A stretch of DNA of 64,000 bases from positions 76,632,001 through 76,696,000 of the forward strand of contig OZ287752.1 of the NCBI GenBank assembly GCA_965649765.1, written 5' to 3'. The notes beneath the pieces were generated by a model. That model did no database searches. It had not been told where the DNA came from and saw only the letters and a list, made by a program, of their open reading frames with translations. The stretch comes from Bispira polyomma. Its lineage: Eukaryota. The position numbers and the translations under genes are program-made. Each line of letters begins with the position of its first letter. Position 1 is the first letter of the stretch. Of the stretch, positions 1 to 13,500 are shown one piece after another.

Positions 1-3000
1 ATATACCCTCAGTATTATTTTCTTCTAACATCATACCCCATTTCATCACACTAATCGGTGTCTTATTTTGTTTCAAGTTATACCCTTCATTCAATATGCG
101 ATACAAATCTTTGCATCCTTTTGTTGGTTTTAACAAACATTTTAAATGAAAAGGGATAAAAGGTCTTGTAATTTCTAATAGTTTGTCCTGCATATATTTA
201 TTACAAAATTTTTTCACAAGAAACCTAACTCTGTAATAGTCCAATATGTTGACAATTAAACGAAATTTAATTTTAATGTTTTCCATGATCATTACTTCGC
301 CCTCTGCATTTACTATGTCATCAACAAAGACTATGCCTTTCTTATACCATGTTGGATAGTACAAGTCCTTTTCAATTTCAACATTAAACCAGATACAGGA
401 TTTCATTACGTCTAGTTTTGAAAACACGGTCTGATTTTTACATAGCTCAGACCAGTAGTCAAAAATGTTACACCAAAACACATTTTTTACATCTTTAAGT
501 TTATTTTTGAACCCATTGCCCCCCATTGTGAAGAAATTGTGTAAATTTTTGCAGCTTACAAACAGCACAATGCTCCATGGGGCATCACTTTGATTTAAAA
601 CTCTTTTCAGCCAATTTAATTTCAGTGCCCTCTCAAAGTGAAAAATATTGATCATTTTGATTCCTCCTTTGAGGTAATCTTGACAAATTGTTTGTCTTTT
701 TACTTTGTCTGGCTTATTATTCCATAAAAAACTATACAGCAAATTATTTACCTTTTTTAAAAATTCTTGAGATGTTGGAAGTGATGTTAAGAGGTGAATA
801 ACTTTTGAGACAATATTTGTTTTGATCAGAGTAATTTTGCCCAGAATTGTAAGATTTCTATGTTTCCATTTTTTAACCTCTTTACACATTTTATTAAAAG
901 CTTTAGTATAGTTTATGTCAGGGATATTGTTTAAATTGACTGAAAATTCTACACCCAACACACAAAACACCGAATTTTCCCAATCCAGCTTGCCAGTGAC
1001 GGATAACTTTTCTTTTGAATAACGCTTTCTCCCAATCCATATTATTTTTGTTTTTTCCATATTCATTTTTAATCCAGAGTAACTTCCATAAATTTCTAAA
1101 GTATTGAGAGCTGCCTGTAGAGAAACTTTTGAACCGTCCAGAATAAGTGTAGTATCGTCTGCAAATTGTGTTAGTTTAAATTCATGATTATTTATCTTGA
1201 TTCCACTTATATTTTTGTTCATTTTAATAAAAAGCGACATAATTTCAGCTGCAATCAGAAAGAGATATGGTGAAATGGGATCGCCCTGTCTACACCCTCT
1301 GCCAATCGCTATTTTTTCTGATAATTTACAGCATTGCAAAACATATGCACCAATATCTTGATTGAATAATTTTACCCAGTTTATAAAGCTTTCATTATAA
1401 CCAAAGAGGGTTAAAGTTTTATAAATAAAATTCCAGGATATGGAATCAAATGCCTTCTCAAAGTCTATAAGCACCAATAATCCTGAAATATTTTTATTTT
1501 CAGTCACTTGCATAATATCATAGATCAACCTAATACTATCATTTATTTGCCTACCTGCTAGAAAGCCGGTTTGGCTTTTTAATATGATTGAGTTAAGTGT
1601 GTTTTTTAATCTATTTGCAATTACTCCAGAAGCAAGCTTATATACAACACAAAGCAAGGAGATTGGCCTCCAATTTTTTTTAAAATCTCCTATCCTTACT
1701 CTCCTTAGGAAGACAGACTATTACACATTGTCGCATGGTGGTGGACAATATTCCCTTTTTGAAACAATTGTTTATTGCATATAATATGATATTTTTTAAT
1801 TTTCCCCAAAATACTTTCAAAAATTCAGCACTTATTCCATCCATTCCAGGTGATTTATTATGTTTCATTTTCTTCAAAATATTCCCCAGTTCTTCAATAG
1901 TTATTTCCTGGCCTAAGTCTGTGTCCCTGACCTTGTTAATTTTGATATCTTTGAAAACTTCAGTAAGATCTTCATTTTCGGTAAGGTGATCTTTACTTTC
2001 AAATAGATTTTCGTGGTATTTTTTTATCTGGTTAAGTATTTCATTTTGCTCTAAGATGTTTTAACCATTACTTAATTCACTGTTTTTTATGTTTTTTTCC
2101 AAATAATTTTTATTCTCCAAATTACAGAAATATTTGGAAGGCTTTTCACCTTCACTTAACCATTGCAGGCGAGTTCAAACTCGTTCTTCTTGAATTTTGG
2201 TTTTCCTTATTTGTTCAAGTTCGGCCTTTTTGTCTGACAAAAGTTCAAGGTTGGTATTGTTTAAGTGATAGCTTTGTTGCTCCAGGTATTCTATATCTTT
2301 GATTAACTCGTTTTCTTTTATGTTTGTTTGTCATTTTAAGTAGCTTGAGAATTTTATTGTTTCACCCCGTATTCGTAGAAATAATACCTCAAGAAATAAA
2401 TCACTATCGATTGTGTAATCTATATTTTCGTAGTTACAGCAATTCTGCAAATGGTTCATATCGTAAACAGGTATTGCATATTTAATTACCTCATCTTGAA
2501 TAGTTTTGTTAATGATTTCCAAGTATTCTTTATTTAAGAGGAGACTATTATTGAATTTCCAATTACCCTTGCCATTTTCAAAATTGTGAAGTACAAATTC
2601 AAGTTCTATCATTGAATGATCTGACCGGTATCCAGGTTTTATGTCACATTTTTTTATAATGTCATTCATGTTATTTGATATTAAAAAGAAATCGAGTCTT
2701 GCTTGTTTCAGGGGTTTTTTCTTTCTCCAGGTAAAACGTAGGCTTTCTGGATGTTGATGCCTGTAGATATCGAGAAGGTCAGCTTGATTTATCATATTTA
2801 ATACTGTTTTTCGTGCTTTACAATTATTTATATGCTTATAGCTTTGGGTGTCTTTGACAGGATCTAACACAAGATTAAAATCCCCACATATTACTGTCTA
2901 GTCAGCATCATTAGTCTGTATATTTTGTATTACAGTGAAAAAGTCAGGGTTGTCAATATTGGGACCATAGAGAGTAATGAGATTTATAGTCATTTTACTA

Positions 3001-3311
3001 AGTTTAAGCACTAGATGTAGATAGTTCCCTTCCTTATCTTTGTTACAGTCTAGTACCTCATATTTAAAATTGTTTCTAAATAGTATTGCAACTCCACGAG
3101 AGTTAGTTTTAGTTCCATGAATAAAGCATTTGCCATTCCACATTTCAGTGACCTTTGATACATCTTTTTCACACCAATGTGTATCTTGTAAGCACAGAAT
3201 ATTTAGCTTGATGTCTTTAAAGTATGACAGTACATCGATCCTTTTTTCCATTTTTTGTAAACCTTAACAATTTGCAGACAATACCTTTAAATTATTTCCA
3301 ATATTTGACAT
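1..3311 (-). mobile_element. L1/Tx1-clade LINE ORF2 (APE endonuclease + reverse transcriptase), disabled; runs off the window edge
   Basis: ATG at 3311 (MSNIGNNLKVLSANC*GLQKMEKR). EN motifs ILCLQDTH, SRGVAIL, LYGPN, CGDFN, GYRSDH. RT motifs KSPGMDG, WRPISLL, IDFEKAFDS, GCRQGDPISPYLFL, QFADDT. Several stops/frameshifts (~3265, 2898, 2331, ~1680). Confidence 0.95.
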
Positions 3312-4460
3312 TTTCTCTGAGATGGAATTTCTCCCCAGGCAAACTCTGAAATATATATTTTATCTATGACAATCGAAATTTTATTTATAAAATTTACTAA
3401 ACTGTTACATCTAGTTTTATATTTATAAATATTAGGATTCTTCCATTGATACCTTATAGTTCTATCAAAACATAAGATATATGACATGTGTAACACAAAG
3501 AACAAGTGACACAAACAGAATATGGTATTAAACACAATTATTGCAACATATTCTATCTTAACTATGAACTTAAACAAAAAATAACAAACTATATATATAT
3601 ATATATACAGTAAATTTGTAAATAACTGCATGGTTACAATCCGGCCAAAAAATTAAATAAAGGTTGGAATCAATGTTAAAAGCGATGTAGATATTATACA
3701 TGTCATACATATTGTTCGGGTTTTAAGAAATTGACTGATTTTCTAGATACTGACAGATATTAAAAAGGAAGGTTTTGTTTATTGCCATATACCAGTGCTT
3801 GTAAACAAAGTTGTACAACAGTATAAATAATTAATTTTAGCGATTGATTTAACAAATCACAATTAGTGTTGGTTATGAAAAGTCTACAGTAGATAAAAAG
3901 TGAGAAGTGTAAAAGTGAGACTATATTCATAATATCAAATGCAAGATAGTTTTAGTTTTAAAGATTCTATTACATTTACTTTCATAACCCACTGTGTAAA
4001 ATAACAACACATTGTACTAATATATGATAATCTCTCACTTCTATTTAGTTGTTAACTATTTCACATACGTGGCCAAACAAGAAATTATGTACATTATCAG
4101 AACATAATCTGGCCATATCTTCCACTAATAATGATTATCTATACATTAACGTTAAAAAAAACAAAAAAAAACAGAAAAAACAAAGTCTAGTAGTTACTAG
4201 GTTATCCTAAAAGTGCCATGTGTACTTATTATGGCTATAGTGTATAGAATACCATTGCTTATAGCACTAAATAATTTATTCTAGCATGGTGGTGGGTTGA
4301 TGGTGACAACATTATACATGTTCTTACTTTCATAAAACACTAGATCACTTATTAGTCCAGAAATAACAACAGCCTTTACAATGGAAACAATAGATACACA
4401 AAACTTGATGGTCATAATCTTTTACTTCAATCAGCTTGTTTATTTTGCTTCATGCTTATA

Positions 4461-4646
4461 CAGTAGAACCTCTATTTTATGGACATCTTGGGGGAGTGAG
4501 AATTGGTTTGGATAATAGAAGGTCCGTAAAATAGAAGTGGTATTTAAGTGTAAAACAATAGCAAAAAATACATTTCGGAGAGTAAAATTGAGTTCCTAAA
4601 ATCAAATACTCGTTTAATAGAGGGTTGGATAACAAAGGTTCTACTG
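4461..4646. mobile_element. Tc1/mariner-pogo-like MITE (family A, TIR CAGTAGAACCT, TA target duplication)
   Basis: TA|CAGTAGAACCTC...AGGTTCTACTG|TA; related copies at 35151, 46367, 56455, 59431 and 59890. Confidence 0.8.
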
Positions 4647-4804
4647 TACGTATTTTGAACTCTCATTAAACTTTATCCACTGTTTACATTTACTCTTTCA
4701 TTTACTGAAGTTTTATTATAAATTATGGCTATACAGGTTTTTGAGTTTTAAAATGGGGTTGTACTATATAATAATACATGTATTTAGGAGAAAAAAAGTC
4801 TGAA

Positions 4805-5866
4805 TTAGTGGGATTTAAGTACTTCTGTTGCTACTTTCCTAATAAGTTCAAACCTCTGTTTGCCTAGGTTATAACCTCCATATTTACGAGTTACAATGAG
4901 TATACCTTGAGTAACTTGATTTTCTTGCAACATCTCCATTAGAATTTTGCCTCCAGCCCATTCACCATCATCATTGTGCCCACAAACAGTTGCACCGTCA
5001 ATGTCTATGTAAGTATAGGCATATGCTATGTGGCTGCTATGTAAAATTAACTCATTCTGGTGAAGGGCACGGAGTACCAGATTGGCTTCATTTTTTGTAT
5101 GCACTGGATGAAAATGACCTTGAAATACACTTTGCTTAACTTCTGTCAGGGGTGAATGCAAGATGTGATCAAAGTTGACAGGATCTCCACTGGATATGGT
5201 GTAATCTAAGGTGTTGTGTTTAAAAACTCCGGTTTGGACCTTCGAGTTAACAATCAGCTTGTCTTTAACAAGTTGTATTTTAGTGTTAGAATTGTTTACC
5301 TTGGCCTCGTTCCGCATCTTTACTAACTGTGGTACCTGAACTGTGCGCCTTTCGCAAACTGCCTGGGGAAGTTGTTCACTCATGGAGTATGGAGTGGTCT
5401 TCAGATTTTTAGCAAAGGAGAGAACTATATCTTTTCCTCTTTGTGAGACAAAAGAAACAACAACAGGTCTGGGTTTACTTCCTTTTTTGCCAATACGATG
5501 GGTTACGTCTACTCGGATCTCCCCACCAGGGTTTTCCCTAGAAAATATGAAGCCAGCTGGAATATTTAATGTAGATAACAGCAGGTTGTGTACTACACTG
5601 TAAATGTCTTCCCTATCTTGCTCAGGGAGTTGGTAGAAAATGAGATTTTTTTTCATTTGCTGAGTTTCCATTGATGATACCTTGGCTTCCAATGATAAAA
5701 CTTTTGAATTCAGCCTTGAAACAATCCCATCCGATTCTTGTAATAGGAGTTTCAATTGTCTGTTCTCATTTTGCAGTGCATTTATATCGATTGCTGTTTC
5801 CACTTGTTGATGTTTTAGAATTTGAAGTATTTCATCCACCTTTTGTTTCATTGACATACTCGTCAA
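4805..5866 (-). CDS. L1-type ORF1 protein (coiled coil + RRM/CTD) fused to a C-terminal IMPACT/YigZ (UPF0029) domain
   Basis: N-terminal heptad coiled coil. ORF1p-like motifs KKNLIFYQLPE, THRIGKKGSKPRPVVVSF, SEQLP..ERR. C-terminal ~117 aa (5158-4808) carries KQSVFQGH, SSHIAYAY, NDDGEWAGGKIL, IVTRKYGGYNLGKQRF, matching IMPACT/YigZ motifs. Co-oriented and upstream of LINE ORF2. First real ATG is a few codons after the TTG start. Confidence 0.85.
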   Translation of the reverse strand: MTSMSMKQKVDEILQILKHQQVETAIDINALQNENRQLKLLLQESDGIVSRLNSKVLSLEAKVSSMETQQMKKNLIFYQLPEQDREDIYSVVHNLLLSTLNIPAGFIFSRENPGGEIRVDVTHRIGKKGSKPRPVVVSFVSQRGKDIVLSFAKNLKTTPYSMSEQLPQAVCERRTVQVPQLVKMRNEAKVNNSNTKIQLVKDKLIVNSKVQTGVFKHNTLDYTISSGDPVNFDHILHSPLTEVKQSVFQGHFHPVHTKNEANLVLRALHQNELILHSSHIAYAYTYIDIDGATVCGHNDDGEWAGGKILMEMLQENQVTQGILIVTRKYGGYNLGKQRFELIRKVATEVLKSH

Positions 5867-5980
5867 GTCACCATTCTCTGAGGAATTACCACTGGGATTT
5901 CAGCCTAGGCTAGGTGGACGTATTTCAAGATCTTGTGTAGCAATATCCTATGAAACAGTTTTTGTTTTTATTTGTGTTCT

Positions 5981-6250
5981 ATTTCAATCTAATACACCAA
6001 TATATCTATTACACTATATGTGTAGTGGAAAGAATTTTTTTTTGAAATGTCCCAAAGCACCTAACAGTTACTTTACTGAAAATTGTTTTAATATTGTTAC
6101 AGTTATTGTTTTTATTCCTAATGTATTTCAATCCAATACACCATTGAATCTGTTCCTTACACTATGTGTGTAGTGGAAAGACTTTTTTTTCAAAATATCC
6201 CAAACCACTAAACAGTCACTTCACTGAAAATCATTTCGATATTATTTACA
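5981..6250. repeat. Tandem dimer of ~145-bp unit upstream of LINE ORF1
   Basis: tttcaatc(t/c)aatacacca...tgtagtggaaaga...ctgaaaat occurs at ~5981 and ~6126. Confidence 0.75.
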
Positions 6251-7129
6251 TAGTAAATCCTTCTTGGTGTTGTATTGACCAAAGGTCAGTCCTTACCAAA
6301 AAAAACAACAAATAATATTAGTTGTGCACACCCAAGGCTGTCACAGACGTTTTTCTTCAATGAACTAGCCTGATATTCATTTTAAACCGCCAATATACAT
6401 AATAGTTCCCTGTATACTACAATAAATTAAAATCCAAGTCCACAACTTGCATTTATCAGACACTAATTGATTTTTTTTTACCCCCTTCCTAAATCAAAAG
6501 GGTTTGGTGGCATTATCAAGGTCTAGATATTCCATCAGTTCTATTTTTATCAAAGGCATCATTTGCACTGGCTTTTCAAAGTACATGTGAACACACGTCA
6601 ATATTTCAAATATGGCATTCTGTAGATTTTTACCTGAAGAAAAAAATATTTGTCTTCCACAAAATATATAGTTTTACAATCTGTGCATTTCTTATTCCCA
6701 GCTCATTTTGTTCACTGGCTATAATTCTTTCCTTTCATAGGTAAATTCCATGATTCCTGTATTTGTTTACTAGAGAAATCTTCTAAAAACGCCTCTCCCA
6801 AAAAAACACATGTTGCATGTTGAAGTGCCAAAATCAAGTTGAAATCAATCAATCTTGAAATTTTGTTGATTTTGACTGCTAGTCATACAACTTGTGCTGC
6901 TCTTCCATAAACGTATGGCCAATCCATTCTGTTCTTCTTGCAATATTTCGACAAATATCTCAATGACTTTATCACCTGACATTTTAAATTTTTCGACCTA
7001 GAACTGGTTTTAAACTTGATTCTTACCTGGGCAATGCCACATCCCTCCACTAAATTTGACTAGATTAGACCAAATCCTGATGACAAACAAACCATTGGAC
7101 ACAGGTAAAAATATGACATCCTCATTAAA

Positions 7130-10100
7130 TCTTTCTTTTGTTTTCATAAAAATCATATATCATCAATACTGTAACATGAAAAACACAATTTTACACAACA
7201 TCATTACTAATGTACTAAATGTTTCCTATATTTTACTTTCATGAAAAGTTTTTAAAAAAGTTTTATGTCTGCAAACATGTAATCAATTTCAAATATACCA
7301 TAATGTACGTAAATAAATTGGCAAATACCCAATTTTGTTGAAATTGACTTTGTGTATCGATTTCAATACTCAATACAAATATTGTTCTTCATAGTTTGTT
7401 TTAAGTCTCCTTTCTAATTTAATCAACTTCAGTAACGTAGCTTTACTGCGCATGTGAAGATAGAGTATTTAGTTGTAACTAACAAGGTATTAATTGGGAG
7501 GAAGATGTCATTGTTTATATGACCTAGTATAATCTCGATTGGAGTAATGCATATAATTTTATTTACTTTAACTTCTGTGCACCTTTTTAAATCTTCTGAA
7601 AGAGTTTTAGCATTTTCACATAAAACTAGTGGATGTAACAATGTTTCTGGATATGAGTGACAAAATCTGCACATTGTTGAATCACTTATGGCCATTTGAC
7701 CAAGGAGTTTGTTTGTTTCCACTATTCAATATTATTCTCTATACTGAAACCAAATTAGTTGGTTATTCTTTATTTACTTTGTTATTATACTTTTTATGAG
7801 TTAAAACAAACATTAAATATTCTTTTCTAAGTTAATCCATCAATAACGGTTTCCAAGTCCTTGTGCCACTCCTTTTTAAATTTTCTTTCCCTGGTTTAGT
7901 AAAAAAGTTAGGTGGTGGGCAAAAAGGGCCTTTGGCAAACTCCCAGAGTTTTAAGTTTAGTACATTATGTGAACTCCTGTATTATGCTCCTAACCTGGAA
8001 GTAGTCCAAGAAGTTTGTGATTGAAAAAATATATTTAGATTCAATCTCTTCCTTAGTTAATATTTTATTTGTGGAGGAGTCCACAAGTTCGCAGATTTGG
8101 GTAATCCTTTTGTTATACCACAATTCTTTGTATAATTCAGCATTTTTTTAGTCTACTATTATACCATAGAGGTGTAGACACTTTATCTAAGCTTGTCTTT
8201 AAGGGAATCGTGCAATATATAAAGTTCCACATTTTAAAAATTTCTCTTTAGAATGGGTTTTTAGTTTTTTTGGTATAATTTTACCGACCAATGTGGGCCA
8301 AAGTCCATTTATTTTTTAATGTGTGTGTTTTCAAACAATTTGACCTACCAACATTCTTCAGATTGTATAAGTCTTCTCATCCAAGTACATTTAAAAGCTT
8401 TAATAGAGTAGCATATATTTATCATTTTTAGCCCACCGTCTGTATATGTTTGAGTGACGTTAACACGTTTTATTTTGTCTGGCTTATTGTCCTAAAGAAA
8501 TTTTGTTTCAAGTTGTTTCAAAAAATTTTCGCTGGGTATAGGACTGACCATAAATAGGTGATTCAACTTGATAATTGCTAAAGTCTTAATTACCATAATT
8601 TTACCCAATGGTTATAGTTCGCTTTCTCCAGTTTTTTAAAGTCTCGTCAATCTTGTGCAGAGCTTTGGGGTATTTCAAATCTGGAATTTTATCCAAATCA
8701 ACGATAAATGCTATTCCCAGTAACGAAAATTCTACCATGACCCAATTTAATTTATAGTTTGTTTTCATTTTTTCTTTGGTAAATCGTTTTCTTCCTATCC
8801 ATACCAATTTTGTCTTGCTAATATTCATTTTTAACCCTGATACTGAACCGAAAACTTCTAAAGTATATAGGGCTGCTAACAACAAACTTGCTGAGCAATC
8901 CATTATCAAAGTAGTGTCATCAGCAAATTGGGTGATTTTAAACTCTTGGTTTCCAACAATTATATCGACAATTTCTTTATTTTTTATCAATTTAAATAGG
9001 ACTTCTGCACACAGAATAAATAGATATGGAACAAAAGGATCTCTCTGCTTACACTCTCTCTATGTTAATTAAATCAGACAGTACACCTGCTTGTAGTATT
9101 TTTACTTTTATATCTCTATTGAAGAGCTTTATCCACTCATTAAAACTTTTACCAAATCTAAATTGTTCTAGAGTTTGGTAAATAAATTTAATCGATATTT
9201 AATCGAAAGCTTTTTTGAAATCGATGAGCATGACAAGTCCATTGATATTCTTATATTGCATGTAATTCACTATATCATAAATTAATCAAGTGCCTTCTCC
9301 AATAAAGTGACTTTAATAAACCCAGTTTGTGCCTTTGCTATTAGTTTGAGCAGAAGTTCTTTTATCCGTGCTGCAATAGCAGAGGGAGCTACCTTATAAA
9401 GGACACTTATTAACGAGATTTGTCTCCAATTTTTTAGCTAATCTAAACAACTAATTATAATTTGTCTAAGACTATTTGGTAGCGAGCCTTTCAAATAGGA
9501 ATGATTTAGTGCCCCAAGAATGAAGTATTTGAGCTTCGACCAAAATACCTTGCAGAAATCAGCGGGAAGGTCGTTGATATCAGGAATTTTATTATTTTTC
9601 ATATTTTCAATGCTAAACTTAGTGTTAGGGGACCTTCTAATTTAGAAGCTTCCTCAAGTGAGAGTTCATTATCAGCGTCAATTAGGCCTTCCCAGTTTAA
9701 ATCTTGTAAATCTTTTTCCCTATTTGCAAAGAGTTTTGCATAAAAGTTCCTTACTTTGTCAAGTATCTCTTTTTGTGATGATGATAATGATGTATCACCA
9801 TTTTCGAGCTGAATCTTTCTTATTTTTTTTTTCTACATATCTATTTTTCTAGATTACAGAAATAATCACAGGGTTTCTCGTTTAAATGCAGGTTCTGTAC
9901 CCTAGATCTTATCATATGGTTATTCATTTGGGACTCTCTTAAACATCGTAATTCTTCTTTTTTTCTTTTCATGCATTCCAAAGATTCAACGGTCTCCACG
10001 TTTTCTAAAATCTCAAACTCAACAGTCAGCCTCTATGCATCGTGCAGTTTTTCTTTTTAACTTTAGTTGCAAATTTTATTGTGTCCCCTCTAATTCTTAG

Positions 10101-11310
10101 CAAAAGCATTTCTGAGAACAGGTCATCGGATATAGTAGATTTAATATGGCTATCTGAAATTGAAGCTAAATTGCTCGAATTATATACAGGTAATATATAT
10201 TGTTGTTTTTAATTTGTACAATAGATTCATTTATAATTTCTAGATCATCTGGATTTTTTAAGTGACTACAATTTAGTCTCCAAACTCCTTTACCTTTTTC
10301 AAAATTATTGAGTATGATATCCACATTTACTCCTGAAAGGTCACTCCGGTACCCCGGCTTTATATTACAACATTGAGTCAAGTCAGTTAAAGTGTTTCAA
10401 ACTAAGAAGTAAACCAGTCGCGCCTGTTTTACTGCATTTCTCCCACTCCAAGTATATCTTTTAGTTGGTAGATTAAAGTATCTAAATGCATCATACAATT
10501 TAAATTGGTTCATTGTGACTGCTGATCTAGATTGGGGGTTATTTATCATCAAATAATTATTCGAGTCTAGCTTTGAGTCAATTGAATTGAATTGAATTTG
10601 GATATTTAACGTTCACTCTAGTACCTGTTTAGGTTATATTGAGACGGGTAGTTGGAAACGCTGGAGAAAACACTGCATACAGTTGATCAAGGTTCTGCAC
10701 TGAAACCAGCGGTCCACAATAAGGAACTCCCACTTTTCCCACATAGGCATCAACGGGATTCGAACTCATGCTGCCCAGAGGTGAGAGACCAGTGATTGTA
10801 AAGCGCAATGCTTGTTAACCACTAGGCTACCGCGCTTTGGGTCAAGGATCATGTTGAAATCTTCACATATTATTGTGTATGTTTTACATGATTCCTCCAT
10901 GTATTACTTCAACTTTAGAAAAAATTATTAAAATTATCTGTATTTGGCACATAGACTAATTAAAAGTACATTACCAATACAGTCTTTAACAGTATTTTTC
11001 ACCTTGTACTCAAAGTCGTTTTTTAAAATTATTGCCACCCCTCTCGAGTTTGATTTAGTACCATGTATTATAGTCTCGTAGGAAGAAAAGAGTATTCGTA
11101 TTTCATTTTTATCTGACAGAGTAACGTGTGTGTCTTGTAGGCAGAGGATATTTACCTTCTCATTATCGTTTAATAAATAATTTAAGACATCATATCTCTT
11201 TTTCTTATCTCTTATACCTTAAACATTTGCTGATGACACTCTTGCTGTATTATGTATAGACATTATGAATACTGGCCCAGAGAGTTTACATTTGCCGTAA
11301 TGTAATTTCA
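7130..11310 (-). mobile_element. Second L1/Tx1-clade LINE, ORF2 only, heavily degraded
   Basis: ATG at 11263 (MSIHNTARVSSANV*GIRDKKKR). Motifs ILCLQDTH, NSRGVAII, GYRSDL, QFADDTTL, C-terminal CRFCHSYPETLLH...C zinc-binding motif (7429-7722). Many stops. Confidence 0.92.
10582..10833 (-). mobile_element. tRNA-derived SINE inserted in the second LINE
   Basis: Minus strand has A-box-like GGTAGCCTAGTGG, B-box GAGTTCGAATCCC and a (TTCAA)n tail. 12-bp TSD gctttgagtcaa (10570-10581) / gctttgggtcaa (10834-10845). Sister copies at ~37175 and ~47945. Confidence 0.88.
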
Positions 11311-11475: not shown

Positions 11476-13500
11476 ATTGTCCACGTACTTGTGTTAGTTA
11501 TAACAGAATGTGGGTGTATCCCATGCCCCACAGAAGGCGCAAATATCCAAGGCAAAATTCTGGACTACTCTACAGGACTGCCCATAGCAAGTGCCATTAT
11601 AACAGCCACTGGCTTCGATAATACCTCATCTGATTCATACGGCAGCTTCTTTCTGGTGCTATCTGACACACAAGACAGCCGGCATGTACAGCTTATTGCT
11701 ACTCACATCCATTACACAGATTTACCCAGATATATTGCCATTTCACAACCAGGACAGTCACATATTGAGATCTTTCAAATGATCAAAAAAGAAGAACCTA
11801 TACAAATTGAGTCATCTGAGGACTCTACCCTGCCGCTCTTTGGAAGTTCTCCATCAGCCAAAAGGAAAAGAGCTGCAATAGGAAAAACAGGTAACAAAGA
11901 GCAACACAGATTTAGTGCTAATATTACTATTCCAGAGGACAGTTTTCTACAATTGGATGGCTCACAATATGATGGTAGTGTGAATGCCTCAATCACAAGT
12001 ATTGATACGTCTGACTTTAACGCCATGATAAACGCTCCAGCTGAGATGAGCTACATCAATAATAACGGTGATTTTCAGCCTTTAAGAGGTTATGCTTTGT
12101 TCACGTTAAACTTCATTGGTGCTTTAGTGGGAGAGAGACTGCAACTCCGACATAATATCTGTATTACAATGGAGCTACCTTATAGACTAAATAGTGAAGC
12201 AGCAATGTTTATGTACAATGATAAGTCAGCATCATGGGACAAGAACATTCAACTAAATGTGACTGAAATTGGCACTTCTATTACATCAATATCAGGATCG
12301 TTTTTTCTTCAGCATGATATTTCTTGGTTAATGATTGCCTCCGAGGTGGTATTAGATAACATTTGTTTCTCTAAGATCAAAGTCTATGAAACTAATAACT
12401 ATGATATCCCTGTGACTGACATACCCAATATTAAAATCATTGTCAATGACCAACCCAGTGGCAGTGTTCCAAATTATGGTGAGATTTCGAGTTTTAGGGC
12501 CATCTCAGATTCAGAAAATATTGAAGGATATTGCATTGCACACTCTTGTCAAAGAACCTCATCAGTACGACATTACACAGGTTTTTTTACAGCTGTAGGT
12601 GGAGTGAACTCTGATGTACCTTATCTAACACCAGCTCTAAATCATGAGGGAATCACAAATCAAACCGCAGAGCTTATTGACTATGATATTGATGACATTG
12701 CTGGTATACCACTAATCAGAGCCAAATTAAATTACAACATCATTCCAAAAGGTAACTATGGACCATATTACGACCAACATGATTACAACTGGCAACGATC
12801 AGATACCTGTTCGAAAATTCCTGAAGATCACTTCCGGTTTTACCTTAATAATGCTACCAGTGAAGATGAATCCTGCATCAAAGAAACTGAATTTAGCGTA
12901 CAGGAGGATGTACTGTCAGCCACAGACCCGGAACATATGAACAATCTGGCTTGGTTCAGCAGATCCCAGCGATCCCTGTATGACACCTGTTATGTGAAGG
13001 TATTGGTATCAAGTCCAGAACCGGTTTCCATAAGGGCTCTTAGTAAAGTCGGTAATATCTCTCACGGTGAGGACATCATTGCAGGGGAAACTCTGTATGG
13101 GTTTAGAGATAAATGTCAGCTTGGTGCCATGTGCCTGGAAGTGAAACATCCTGGAAAGGTGGCAGACGGTCAGATGGACTATACCCGCATTGAAATATCA
13201 CATCTAAGAAGTACAGGTAGTGATCTAGCTTGCAGCCTAACCGATATCAAGTGGGAAATAACTGCTGCCTATGGAGAATATATAACTACTTCACCAGGTA
13301 ACCCAGAGTTTCATATGTATTTGAAGAATTCTCCATTTGGGCCAACATTTGGTGTCTACTGTGTCAAAAGTGAGCAAAATAAGCAAACTGCGAGGAATAA
13401 AGCCAAGGCTATGTGTTACAGGGGGGATTATGATGATTCTCTAACTCTACTTGAGAAAGAAAATAGCGTCAATTGGGCTGTGAAATTTGATTGTCAATGA
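11476..13500 (+). CDS. Terminal exon of CILP-like paralog A (upstream exons not in window)
   Basis: Acceptor tttcag| at 11475, phase 0, intact 674 codons. Collinear with exon 9 of the 30737-41004 gene. Furin-type site KRKR at 11860-11871. AATAAA at 13600. Confidence 0.88.
   Translation: MVHVLVLVITECGCIPCPTEGANIQGKILDYSTGLPIASAIITATGFDNTSSDSYGSFFLVLSDTQDSRHVQLIATHIHYTDLPRYIAISQPGQSHIEIFQMIKKEEPIQIESSEDSTLPLFGSSPSAKRKRAAIGKTGNKEQHRFSANITIPEDSFLQLDGSQYDGSVNASITSIDTSDFNAMINAPAEMSYINNNGDFQPLRGYALFTLNFIGALVGERLQLRHNICITMELPYRLNSEAAMFMYNDKSASWDKNIQLNVTEIGTSITSISGSFFLQHDISWLMIASEVVLDNICFSKIKVYETNNYDIPVTDIPNIKIIVNDQPSGSVPNYGEISSFRAISDSENIEGYCIAHSCQRTSSVRHYTGFFTAVGGVNSDVPYLTPALNHEGITNQTAELIDYDIDDIAGIPLIRAKLNYNIIPKGNYGPYYDQHDYNWQRSDTCSKIPEDHFRFYLNNATSEDESCIKETEFSVQEDVLSATDPEHMNNLAWFSRSQRSLYDTCYVKVLVSSPEPVSIRALSKVGNISHGEDIIAGETLYGFRDKCQLGAMCLEVKHPGKVADGQMDYTRIEISHLRSTGSDLACSLTDIKWEITAAYGEYITTSPGNPEFHMYLKNSPFGPTFGVYCVKSEQNKQTARNKAKAMCYRGDYDDSLTLLEKENSVNWAVKFDCQ

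Follow-up and report, generated by a model that had tools for sequence, protein, structure and literature searches.

Proteins encoded by the first open reading frame (ORF1p) of long interspersed nuclear elements (LINEs) fall into three described classes, namely LINE-1-like, Jockey-like with zinc knuckles, and esterase-type (PMC3905857). The esterase-type ORF1p of CR1/L2 elements (e.g., ZfL2-1) provides a precedent for an enzyme-like accessory domain behind the coiled coil of a LINE ORF1p; the esterase domain has a single origin and yet is scattered among LINE clades, and these proteins contain no RRM and have a coiled coil that forms an antiparallel dimer (PMC3905857). Separately, the protein family UPF0029 is conserved from bacteria to humans and includes the ancient domain of Yih1/IMPACT, which interacts with ribosomes and whose conserved residues cluster on one face (PMC4503747). 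In the present analysis, we describe a locus that combines the two. The window analysed here is a 64,000-nucleotide stretch of the Bispira polyomma genome (contig OZ287752.1, positions 76,632,001 to 76,696,000), and the frame at its positions 4805..5866 on the minus strand is, with a probability that we put at roughly 85%, the ORF1 of an L1-like (L1/Tx1-type) retrotransposon without long terminal repeats (non-LTR), encoding a LINE-1-type ORF1p with a C-terminal IMPACT/UPF0029 domain that was captured once and kept under selection. The same figure covers the proposal that the domain has been retained under purifying selection while the LINE lineage split into many families.

An IMPACT domain on a complete LINE-1-like ORF1p is a new combination with respect to the three ORF1p classes, since IMPACT is not among the domains of that classification (PMC3905857). 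The initial annotation of this locus had likewise not counted IMPACT among the known ORF1p accessory domains, and our literature search, which left Repbase and Dfam outside its scope, returned no paper joining UPF0029, Impact_N or PF01205 with retrotransposons. A 2024 survey of gastropod non-LTR/LINE elements makes no mention of an IMPACT domain.

In the ORF listing, 4805..5866 is one uninterrupted reading frame, which comprises 353 aa if translation begins at a TTG; the first ATG, at 5857, gives a protein of 350 aa, and the frame is already open from 5899. Its translation contains all motifs quoted in the initial annotation, KQSVFQGH, SSHIAYAY, DDGEWAGG and IVTRKYGGYNLGKQRF. The predicted IMPACT domain in its C-terminal part was borne out by Pfam, where UPF0029/Impact_N (PF01205) matches aa 244-350 over the entire profile (1-107 of 107) with 71.6 bits (cut-off 27, E 6e-20), and the protein stops three residues past this match. 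Other ORF1-IMPACT subfamilies score 46-92 bits against the same profile. The best solved sequence relative is the IMPACT homologue Yih1 of yeast (6bqi). By Pfam, AlphaFold2 and structural alignment together, the domain occupies the last 119 residues (4808..5164, minus strand). Modelled alone with a 45-sequence alignment, these residues gave a predicted local distance difference test (pLDDT) of 95.3, and in VIA-align the model superposed on TT1547 (2cve) with Z 17.2 and a root-mean-square deviation (rmsd) of 1.5 A over 109 residues, on YigZ (1vi7) with Z 16.9, and on Yih1 (6bqi) with Z 10.6. The remaining matches, which include the YicC endoribonuclease, RNase-PH-like exosome subunits, uS5, domain IV of EF-G and GHMP kinases, stay at Z ≤6.7, and structural matches at Z <8 may reflect a mere common fold.

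The domain thus described shares with IMPACT/Yih1 (6bqi) the Pfam family, the fold, the LG..RF helix and the DDGE..(A/S)G spacing. The protein that carries it differs from IMPACT/Yih1 in that it is without the RWD domain and the linker, is fused to an ORF1p (RNA-binding by homology), is multicopy, and is transposon-borne. Pfam detected no RWD domain in the window protein, as had been noted from the translation, and none in four further subfamilies. With YigZ/TT1547 (1vi7, 2cve), it shares a nearly identical fold (Z 17, rmsd 1.5-1.7 A) and the S, H, DDGE, R and GG residues, whereas in YigZ a C-terminal DUF1949 follows UPF0029, and the window protein has no DUF1949. In the solved YigZ proteins, DDGE is also followed by an insert of two residues, and alignment with the IMPACT profile ends at LG, before the RF helix. 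The suggestion that the LG..RF ending is more eukaryotic than YigZ-like therefore holds in comparison with the solved YigZ proteins but does not extend to the bacterial family as a whole, some homologues of which have LG.DRF.

For the front part of the protein, the AlphaFold2 model was built from an alignment of 23 family members (A1) and reached a mean pLDDT of 89.9 and a predicted template-modelling (TM) score of 0.76. In the numbering of the 350-aa protein, which is used for residues in this text, the model consists of four parts: one long helix (residues 3-68), an RRM-like domain (71-152), a small domain (158-203) resembling the C-terminal domain (CTD) of L1 ORF1p, and a compact alpha/beta domain (238-349). 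On the minus strand, the coiled-coil helix corresponds to 5654..5851, the L1-ORF1p-like RRM to 5402..5647, and the L1-ORF1p-like CTD to 5249..5386. In a Foldseek search of the PDB, the human LINE-1 ORF1p trimer (2ykp/2yko) ranked first with E 8e-7 to 1.5e-6 and a TM score of 0.62 (target) over 190-196 columns. The L1 ORF1p set as a whole (2ykp/2yko/2ykq) spanned E 8e-7 to 2e-5, TM 0.42-0.62 (target) and 190-214 columns and was followed by 2ldy and 2w7a, which together with 2ykp/2yko and the modelled secondary structure define the RRM. The alignment to the trimer (about 190 columns) takes in the coiled coil, the RRM and the CTD. After L1 ORF1p came Yih1 (6bqi), TT1547 (2cve) and YigZ (1vi7). 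In the predicted structure, the front two thirds of the protein are therefore folded like human LINE-1 ORF1p, with helix, RRM and CTD, as the initial annotation had proposed for this half. In the ESM Atlas, an L1 RBD-like cluster was matched at 0.78 only, which we take as a lead.

A model of three copies of residues 1-235 scored 0.76 (best of three controls 0.02) and placed in-register heptad contacts along residues 3-67; three runs agreed in ≥50% of contacts, and partner pLDDT was ≥70. In the calibration of the mark used here, which was made on two copies, not three, 21 of 30 same-chain pairs among solved proteins attained it and none of 23 solved single chains did, and a pass may stem from the model's memory of L1 ORF1p. 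With this proviso, the model supports a predicted self-association like that of L1 ORF1p, in a parallel three-helix form.

The window protein thus resembles human and other mammalian LINE-1 ORF1p in the order of long N-terminal helix, RRM and CTD, and in its position upstream of an ORF2 that encodes an apurinic/apyrimidinic-type endonuclease (APE; EN) and a reverse transcriptase (RT). It differs by the extra 119-residue IMPACT domain past the CTD. The spacer between the two frames is also different, being 0.5-1.8 kb in the elements studied here and tens of bases in human L1. Compared to the esterase-type ORF1p, the accessory domain has in this case been added onto a complete RRM-CTD protein.

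ORF2 lies downstream of ORF1 in the same orientation. The ORF1 remnant (4805..5866, minus strand) is still open; measured against the 414-aa ORF1p of the siblings, it is missing the native start and ~36 N-terminal codons. It is followed by an AT-rich spacer of ~1.5 kb (3309..4804, GC content 0.28) that is conserved in sibling copies, and then by an ORF2 remnant (1..3308) with an APE endonuclease at 3308-2277 and a reverse transcriptase at 2111-8 in several broken frames, all on the minus strand; the start of the window truncates ORF2 at about RT residue 660 of 830. Read in the direction of the element, window positions 5942 to 1 align with positions 1425-7378 of a sibling on the same chromosome as one unbroken stretch of 5987 bases at 95.5% identity, and therefore ORF1, the 1.5-kb spacer and ORF2 constitute one unit. 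Window positions 6817 to 5939 correspond to sibling positions 465-1300, and near 5939-5942 a 124-bp deletion relative to the siblings takes the native ATG and ~36 codons. Five sibling copies have a common 5' end at position 452-465, and three full-length siblings are ~7.6 kb long, 97-98% identical, and have poly(A) 3' ends. One of them is bounded by an exact 12-bp target-site duplication (TSD) at both junctions (equalled by 2 of 2000 shuffles). The 3' end of the window copy lies beyond the window, and the poly(A) and TSD evidence comes from the siblings. The window copy itself is ~4.5% diverged from the siblings and is dead, with its start codon deleted and its ORF2 broken.

Intact ORF2 relatives best match human L1 ORF2p, with 203 bits for the RT (compared to 112 for R2) and 107 bits for the EN. 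Judged by these matches, the ORF2 of the element is L1-like, with L1 and Tx1 taken together. Of the earlier proposal of an ORF1 upstream of and co-oriented with an L1/Tx1 ORF2, the position, the orientation and the L1-like EN/RT were thus confirmed.

The fusion is multicopy, old and diversified, and not a one-off. When the 1.03-Gb assembly that contains the window was searched with the ORF1 protein, 1224 first-look candidates emerged, 115 of which were scored and provide the identity, frame and E figures that follow. All 115 are at E<1e-51 and fall into groups at about 95, 55, 50, 37 and 33% identity (overall range 32-95%); full-length matches in each group cover both halves of the query, and about 60 candidates, as counted from the table, have no internal stop. 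An EN/RT ORF2 begins 0.5-1.8 kb past ORF1 in each subfamily followed. In another assembly, a 4.6-Mb contig carries a 49%-identical ORF1-IMPACT gene and, after 1.16 kb, Exo_endo_phos and RVT_1+zf-RVT genes. The linkage of the fusion to ORF2, which the initial annotation had called for along with a multicopy state, was thus seen in every subfamily followed as well as in this second assembly. Beyond these genomes, a domain-only search of 1.84 billion cluster representatives produced 1559 matches at E≤1e-3, and 70 of the 161 proteins retrieved have the ORF1 front part together with the IMPACT domain. As 14 of these 70 were from an earlier whole-protein search, the remainder add at least 56 clusters at the 50% identity level. 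In the ESM Atlas, the nearest two clusters, with 57 and 242 members, are annotated as "hypothetical protein" and Impact_N and are commonest in Mollusca. Two deep-branch members, P0112 and P0070, are on ~2-kb contigs that offer no genomic context.

Some families are young and have intact frames. In one, three copies have an apparently identical 432-aa ORF1p (equal length, same first 45 and last 30 residues); in another, identity among three copies is 98.7-99.8% across ~4.7 kb, and every one of them has an ORF2 that is open for >1080 aa. A further family has a 495-aa ORF1p that keeps the cellular-type TRWYGG, with an endonuclease ORF 1.07 kb downstream and nearly identical copies. This last family comprises L045 and L047-L050 (G000 C6, C1, C4; e.g., L047:361-1845, plus strand), and its domain scores best against cellular IMPACT.

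To place the domain among its relatives, a maximum-likelihood tree of 89 domains (122 columns, LG+C20) was rooted on 11 bacterial homologues. A single clade (bootstrap 99, SH-like approximate likelihood ratio test 84) holds all 50 LINE domains together with two fragments of unknown architecture. It is sister to three RWD-bearing proteins (99/93) and nested in other RWD-bearing proteins, with the bacterial homologues separate (100/97). Cellular IMPACT is represented here by RWD-bearing proteins of the public library, the source genome's own IMPACT not being among them. An RWD domain occurs in 32 of the 51 non-LINE relatives scanned (the closest ones), and DUF1949 in none. This topology, with the LINE clade (99/84) placed within RWD-bearing IMPACT, fits a single capture of the domain from a cellular RWD-IMPACT gene, and the capture from a host-type gene that had been proposed for this locus is in this respect upheld. 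The host IMPACT gene was not located: a search of the genome with an RWD-IMPACT protein matched the ancient domain in LINE copies only, and none of the eight RWD loci in the genome has an IMPACT exon within 1.5 kb.

Two proteins of the public library, P0125 and P0142, lie inside the LINE IMPACT clade and have no detectable ORF1 front part. Their IMPACT domain is near the N-terminus and is followed by ~115 residues, and one 90%-identity cluster-mate, P0177, is 579 aa long. The library also contains UPF0029 fusions of non-LINE type, namely RWD+UPF0029+MJ1316, HEPN_DZIP3 with two UPF0029, and two or three UPF0029 in tandem; P0048, P0042, P0019, P0024, P0040, P0053 and P0108 have such unusual UPF0029 architectures. 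Such architectures are a hint that RNA is what the ancient domain works on.

The ORF1-IMPACT gene is found on at least two ORF2 backbones. The subfamily at 33% identity has an intact ORF2 of 1087 aa that is only ~25% identical to the L1-like ORF2s, scores 67 bits to human L1 ORF2p, and matches Pfam Exo_endo_phos_2. By contrast, the best match of its ORF1p (41.7%, 308 bits) comes from a subfamily in which ORF2 is L1-like, and in the tree its IMPACT domain is placed well inside the LINE clade. These disagreeing histories of ORF1 and ORF2 suggest an exchange of the ORF1 cassette among LINE clades. The copies of this young family with a non-L1-type ORF2 (L143:2275-5535, minus strand, L146 and L147; G000 C12 and C2) are the ones mentioned above as 98.7-99.8% identical; their open ORF2s are of 1087-1139 aa, and the inter-ORF spacer holds ~176-bp tandem repeats.

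Conservation within the domain was considered at the level of single residues and of substitution rates. Residues S243, H276, D296/D297/E299, V322, R324, G328, G332, R335 and F336, which do not vary among RWD-bearing or among bacterial homologues, are retained by 96-100% of the 50 LINE domains. Of the family-wide invariant positions (S, H, DDGE, V.R, GG, LG), those that depart from this level are the Trp following R324, the leading G of GG (62%) and another Gly. Between subfamilies, the proportion of synonymous differences (pS) is saturated (median 0.80-0.82), and the proportion of nonsynonymous differences (pN) is 0.27-0.5; pN and pS were used at this level since the synonymous rate (dS) is saturated there. 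The pN is equal across the parts of the protein, with a median of 0.47 for the RNA-binding part and 0.44 for the IMPACT part. Within subfamilies, omega ranges from 0.2 to 0.8 on very few changes, the copies being too close, and the window copy gives a nonsynonymous-to-synonymous rate ratio (dN/dS) of 0.3-0.4 against its siblings.

Several observations weigh against the interpretation of the frame as a LINE-1-type ORF1 with a captured and selected domain. The front two thirds of the window protein have zero Pfam matches, and the Pfam L1 ORF1 models (Transposase_22 and related) give no match at E<0.1 for five family members; the sequence-profile check proposed for this half thus gave no match, identity to LINE-1 ORF1p in structural alignments is just 13-18%, and the L1-like assignment of the front half rests on predicted structure. 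The TSDs were also uneven, since one of the three full-length siblings has the clean duplication described above, one a gapped duplication of ~15 bp, and one no significant duplication. The tree has just 122 columns, and its outgroup was picked by a TRW[YF]GG pattern. Most LINE lineages have lost two residues for which cellular and bacterial homologues show 100% conservation, the Trp of RWYGG and one Gly, and for this reason the activity of the domain may have changed in LINEs. No biochemical function has been assigned to the ancient domain, and no catalytic activity is known for any UPF0029 protein (PMC4503747). Finally, a relative in another assembly (L141:7001-8254, plus strand) has no EN/RT detected within 7 kb downstream. 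For this 417-aa ORF1-IMPACT gene, which has four cluster members of equal length on different contigs, the candidate explanations are an ORF1 copied on its own, rearrangement of an element, or domestication.

Domestication was also considered for the window frame itself, which in that case would be a single-locus host gene derived from an ORF1 and outside any transposon. The frame has stayed open despite the broken ORF2, an AATAAA is found about 90 bp past its stop, and its dN/dS against the siblings is low. However, it is embedded in 6 kb of sequence that can be aligned collinearly with sibling elements (95.5% identity), the family start codon and N-terminal region have been lost by the 124-bp deletion, and a low dN/dS is expected because substitutions had become fixed while the lineage was active, prior to insertion of the copies. 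We therefore regard domestication of this frame as extremely improbable. Only slightly more credible, and still very improbable, is a functionless passenger that has not yet decayed. Accessory sequences can hitch-hike on LINEs, and the relaxation of an otherwise invariant Trp and one Gly would agree with such a state, but the domain is full-length in subfamilies that are 32-55% identical and in other assemblies, its pN is no higher than that of the RRM/CTD part even though pS is saturated, its invariant residues are kept, and young families with intact ORFs exist at ~99% copy identity. A domain retained for a function in the element is the reading that we carry forward.

As for that function, the ORF1p would, by homology and from the three-copy model, form trimers through its coiled coil and, like L1 ORF1p, coat its own RNA, and the IMPACT domain would serve the life cycle of the element. 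Our preferred mechanism, a conjecture that we hold tentatively, is that the IMPACT domain tethers ORF1p to the translating ribosome or to RNA. Such a tether could favour assembly of the ribonucleoprotein (RNP) in cis, or translation of ORF2 over the unusually long spacer, and would not act through GCN1, the RWD domain being missing. We favour a role at the ribosome or on RNA because Yih1/IMPACT contacts ribosomes, ORF1p acts on mRNA at the ribosome, the spacers are long, and UPF0029 is fused elsewhere to MJ1316 and HEPN domains. It is possible, if doubtful, that the domain is instead an enzyme or a module for RNA ends or nucleic acids, with the RNA of the LINE or the site of integration as its place of action. 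The polar residues that are invariant throughout (S, H, H, DDGE, R, R) have been retained, as expected of an active or ligand-binding site, one of the fusion partners, MJ1316, is associated with recognition of cyclic RNA ends and another is HEPN_DZIP3, and the weak structural neighbours at Z 5-6.7, the YicC endoribonuclease and RNase-PH-like exosome subunits, provide a lead only. Neighbours below Z 8 may again represent a common fold, domain co-occurrence is indirect, and the absence of any known catalytic activity among UPF0029 proteins speaks against an enzyme (PMC4503747). Manipulation of the host integrated stress response or translation control, by which LINE translation would keep going under stress, is suggested by the inhibition of GCN2 by cellular IMPACT/Yih1 (PMC4503747) and by the descent of the LINE domain from a cellular RWD-IMPACT gene in the tree. 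That inhibition is a competition for GCN1 (PMC4503747), and no RWD domain was found in the LINE proteins scanned. Since the RWD domain is missing from these proteins, interference with GCN2 is unlikely. It is through the RWD domain that IMPACT competes for GCN1.

Returning to the tether, the UPF0029 domain is found here without RWD and inside a protein that is expected to bind its own mRNA when this emerges from the ribosome; taken with the MJ1316 and HEPN fusions, this context suggests a connection to the ribosome or to RNA. In a broader scenario, which we consider rather doubtful, UPF0029 would be a ribosome- or RNA-acting module, and a LINE lineage would have taken the host IMPACT domain, become reliant on it, either for assembling its RNP preferentially in cis or for translating ORF2 over a long spacer, and later passed the ORF1 cassette between LINE clades. 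If so, these elements would be a natural RWD-free setting in which to learn the function of UPF0029, and element mobility with and without the domain would give a simple genetic read-out for this long-standing question.

Upstream of ORF1, sibling alignment places the 5' untranslated region of the element at 5867..6817 (minus strand); this region holds the deletion site and a tandem array of a 148-bp monomer (1.9 copies, 5955-6231, minus strand, detected by TRF). The monomers also occur in sibling 5' untranslated regions and recall the monomeric promoters of mouse L1. At the N-terminus of the ORF1p, a motif KKRNLS.LS ... SP ... PKK..KM is kept across subfamilies and assemblies (A1 columns ~17-50; e.g., L005:1318-1450, plus strand) and is a candidate signal for nuclear localisation or phosphorylation; the 124-bp deletion has removed it from the window copy.

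Directly upstream of the 5' end of the element, a second degraded L1-like ORF2 with EN, RT and C-terminal part is found at 7441-11272 (minus strand). As no ORF1 of its own was detected within the window, this LINE remnant is probably 5'-truncated. The place expected for its ORF1 is occupied by a 669-aa open frame at 11491-13500 (plus strand) with a CILP_C match of 68 bits (cartilage intermediate-layer protein-like) and a weak CarboxypepD_reg-like match, which is presumably an exon of a host gene.

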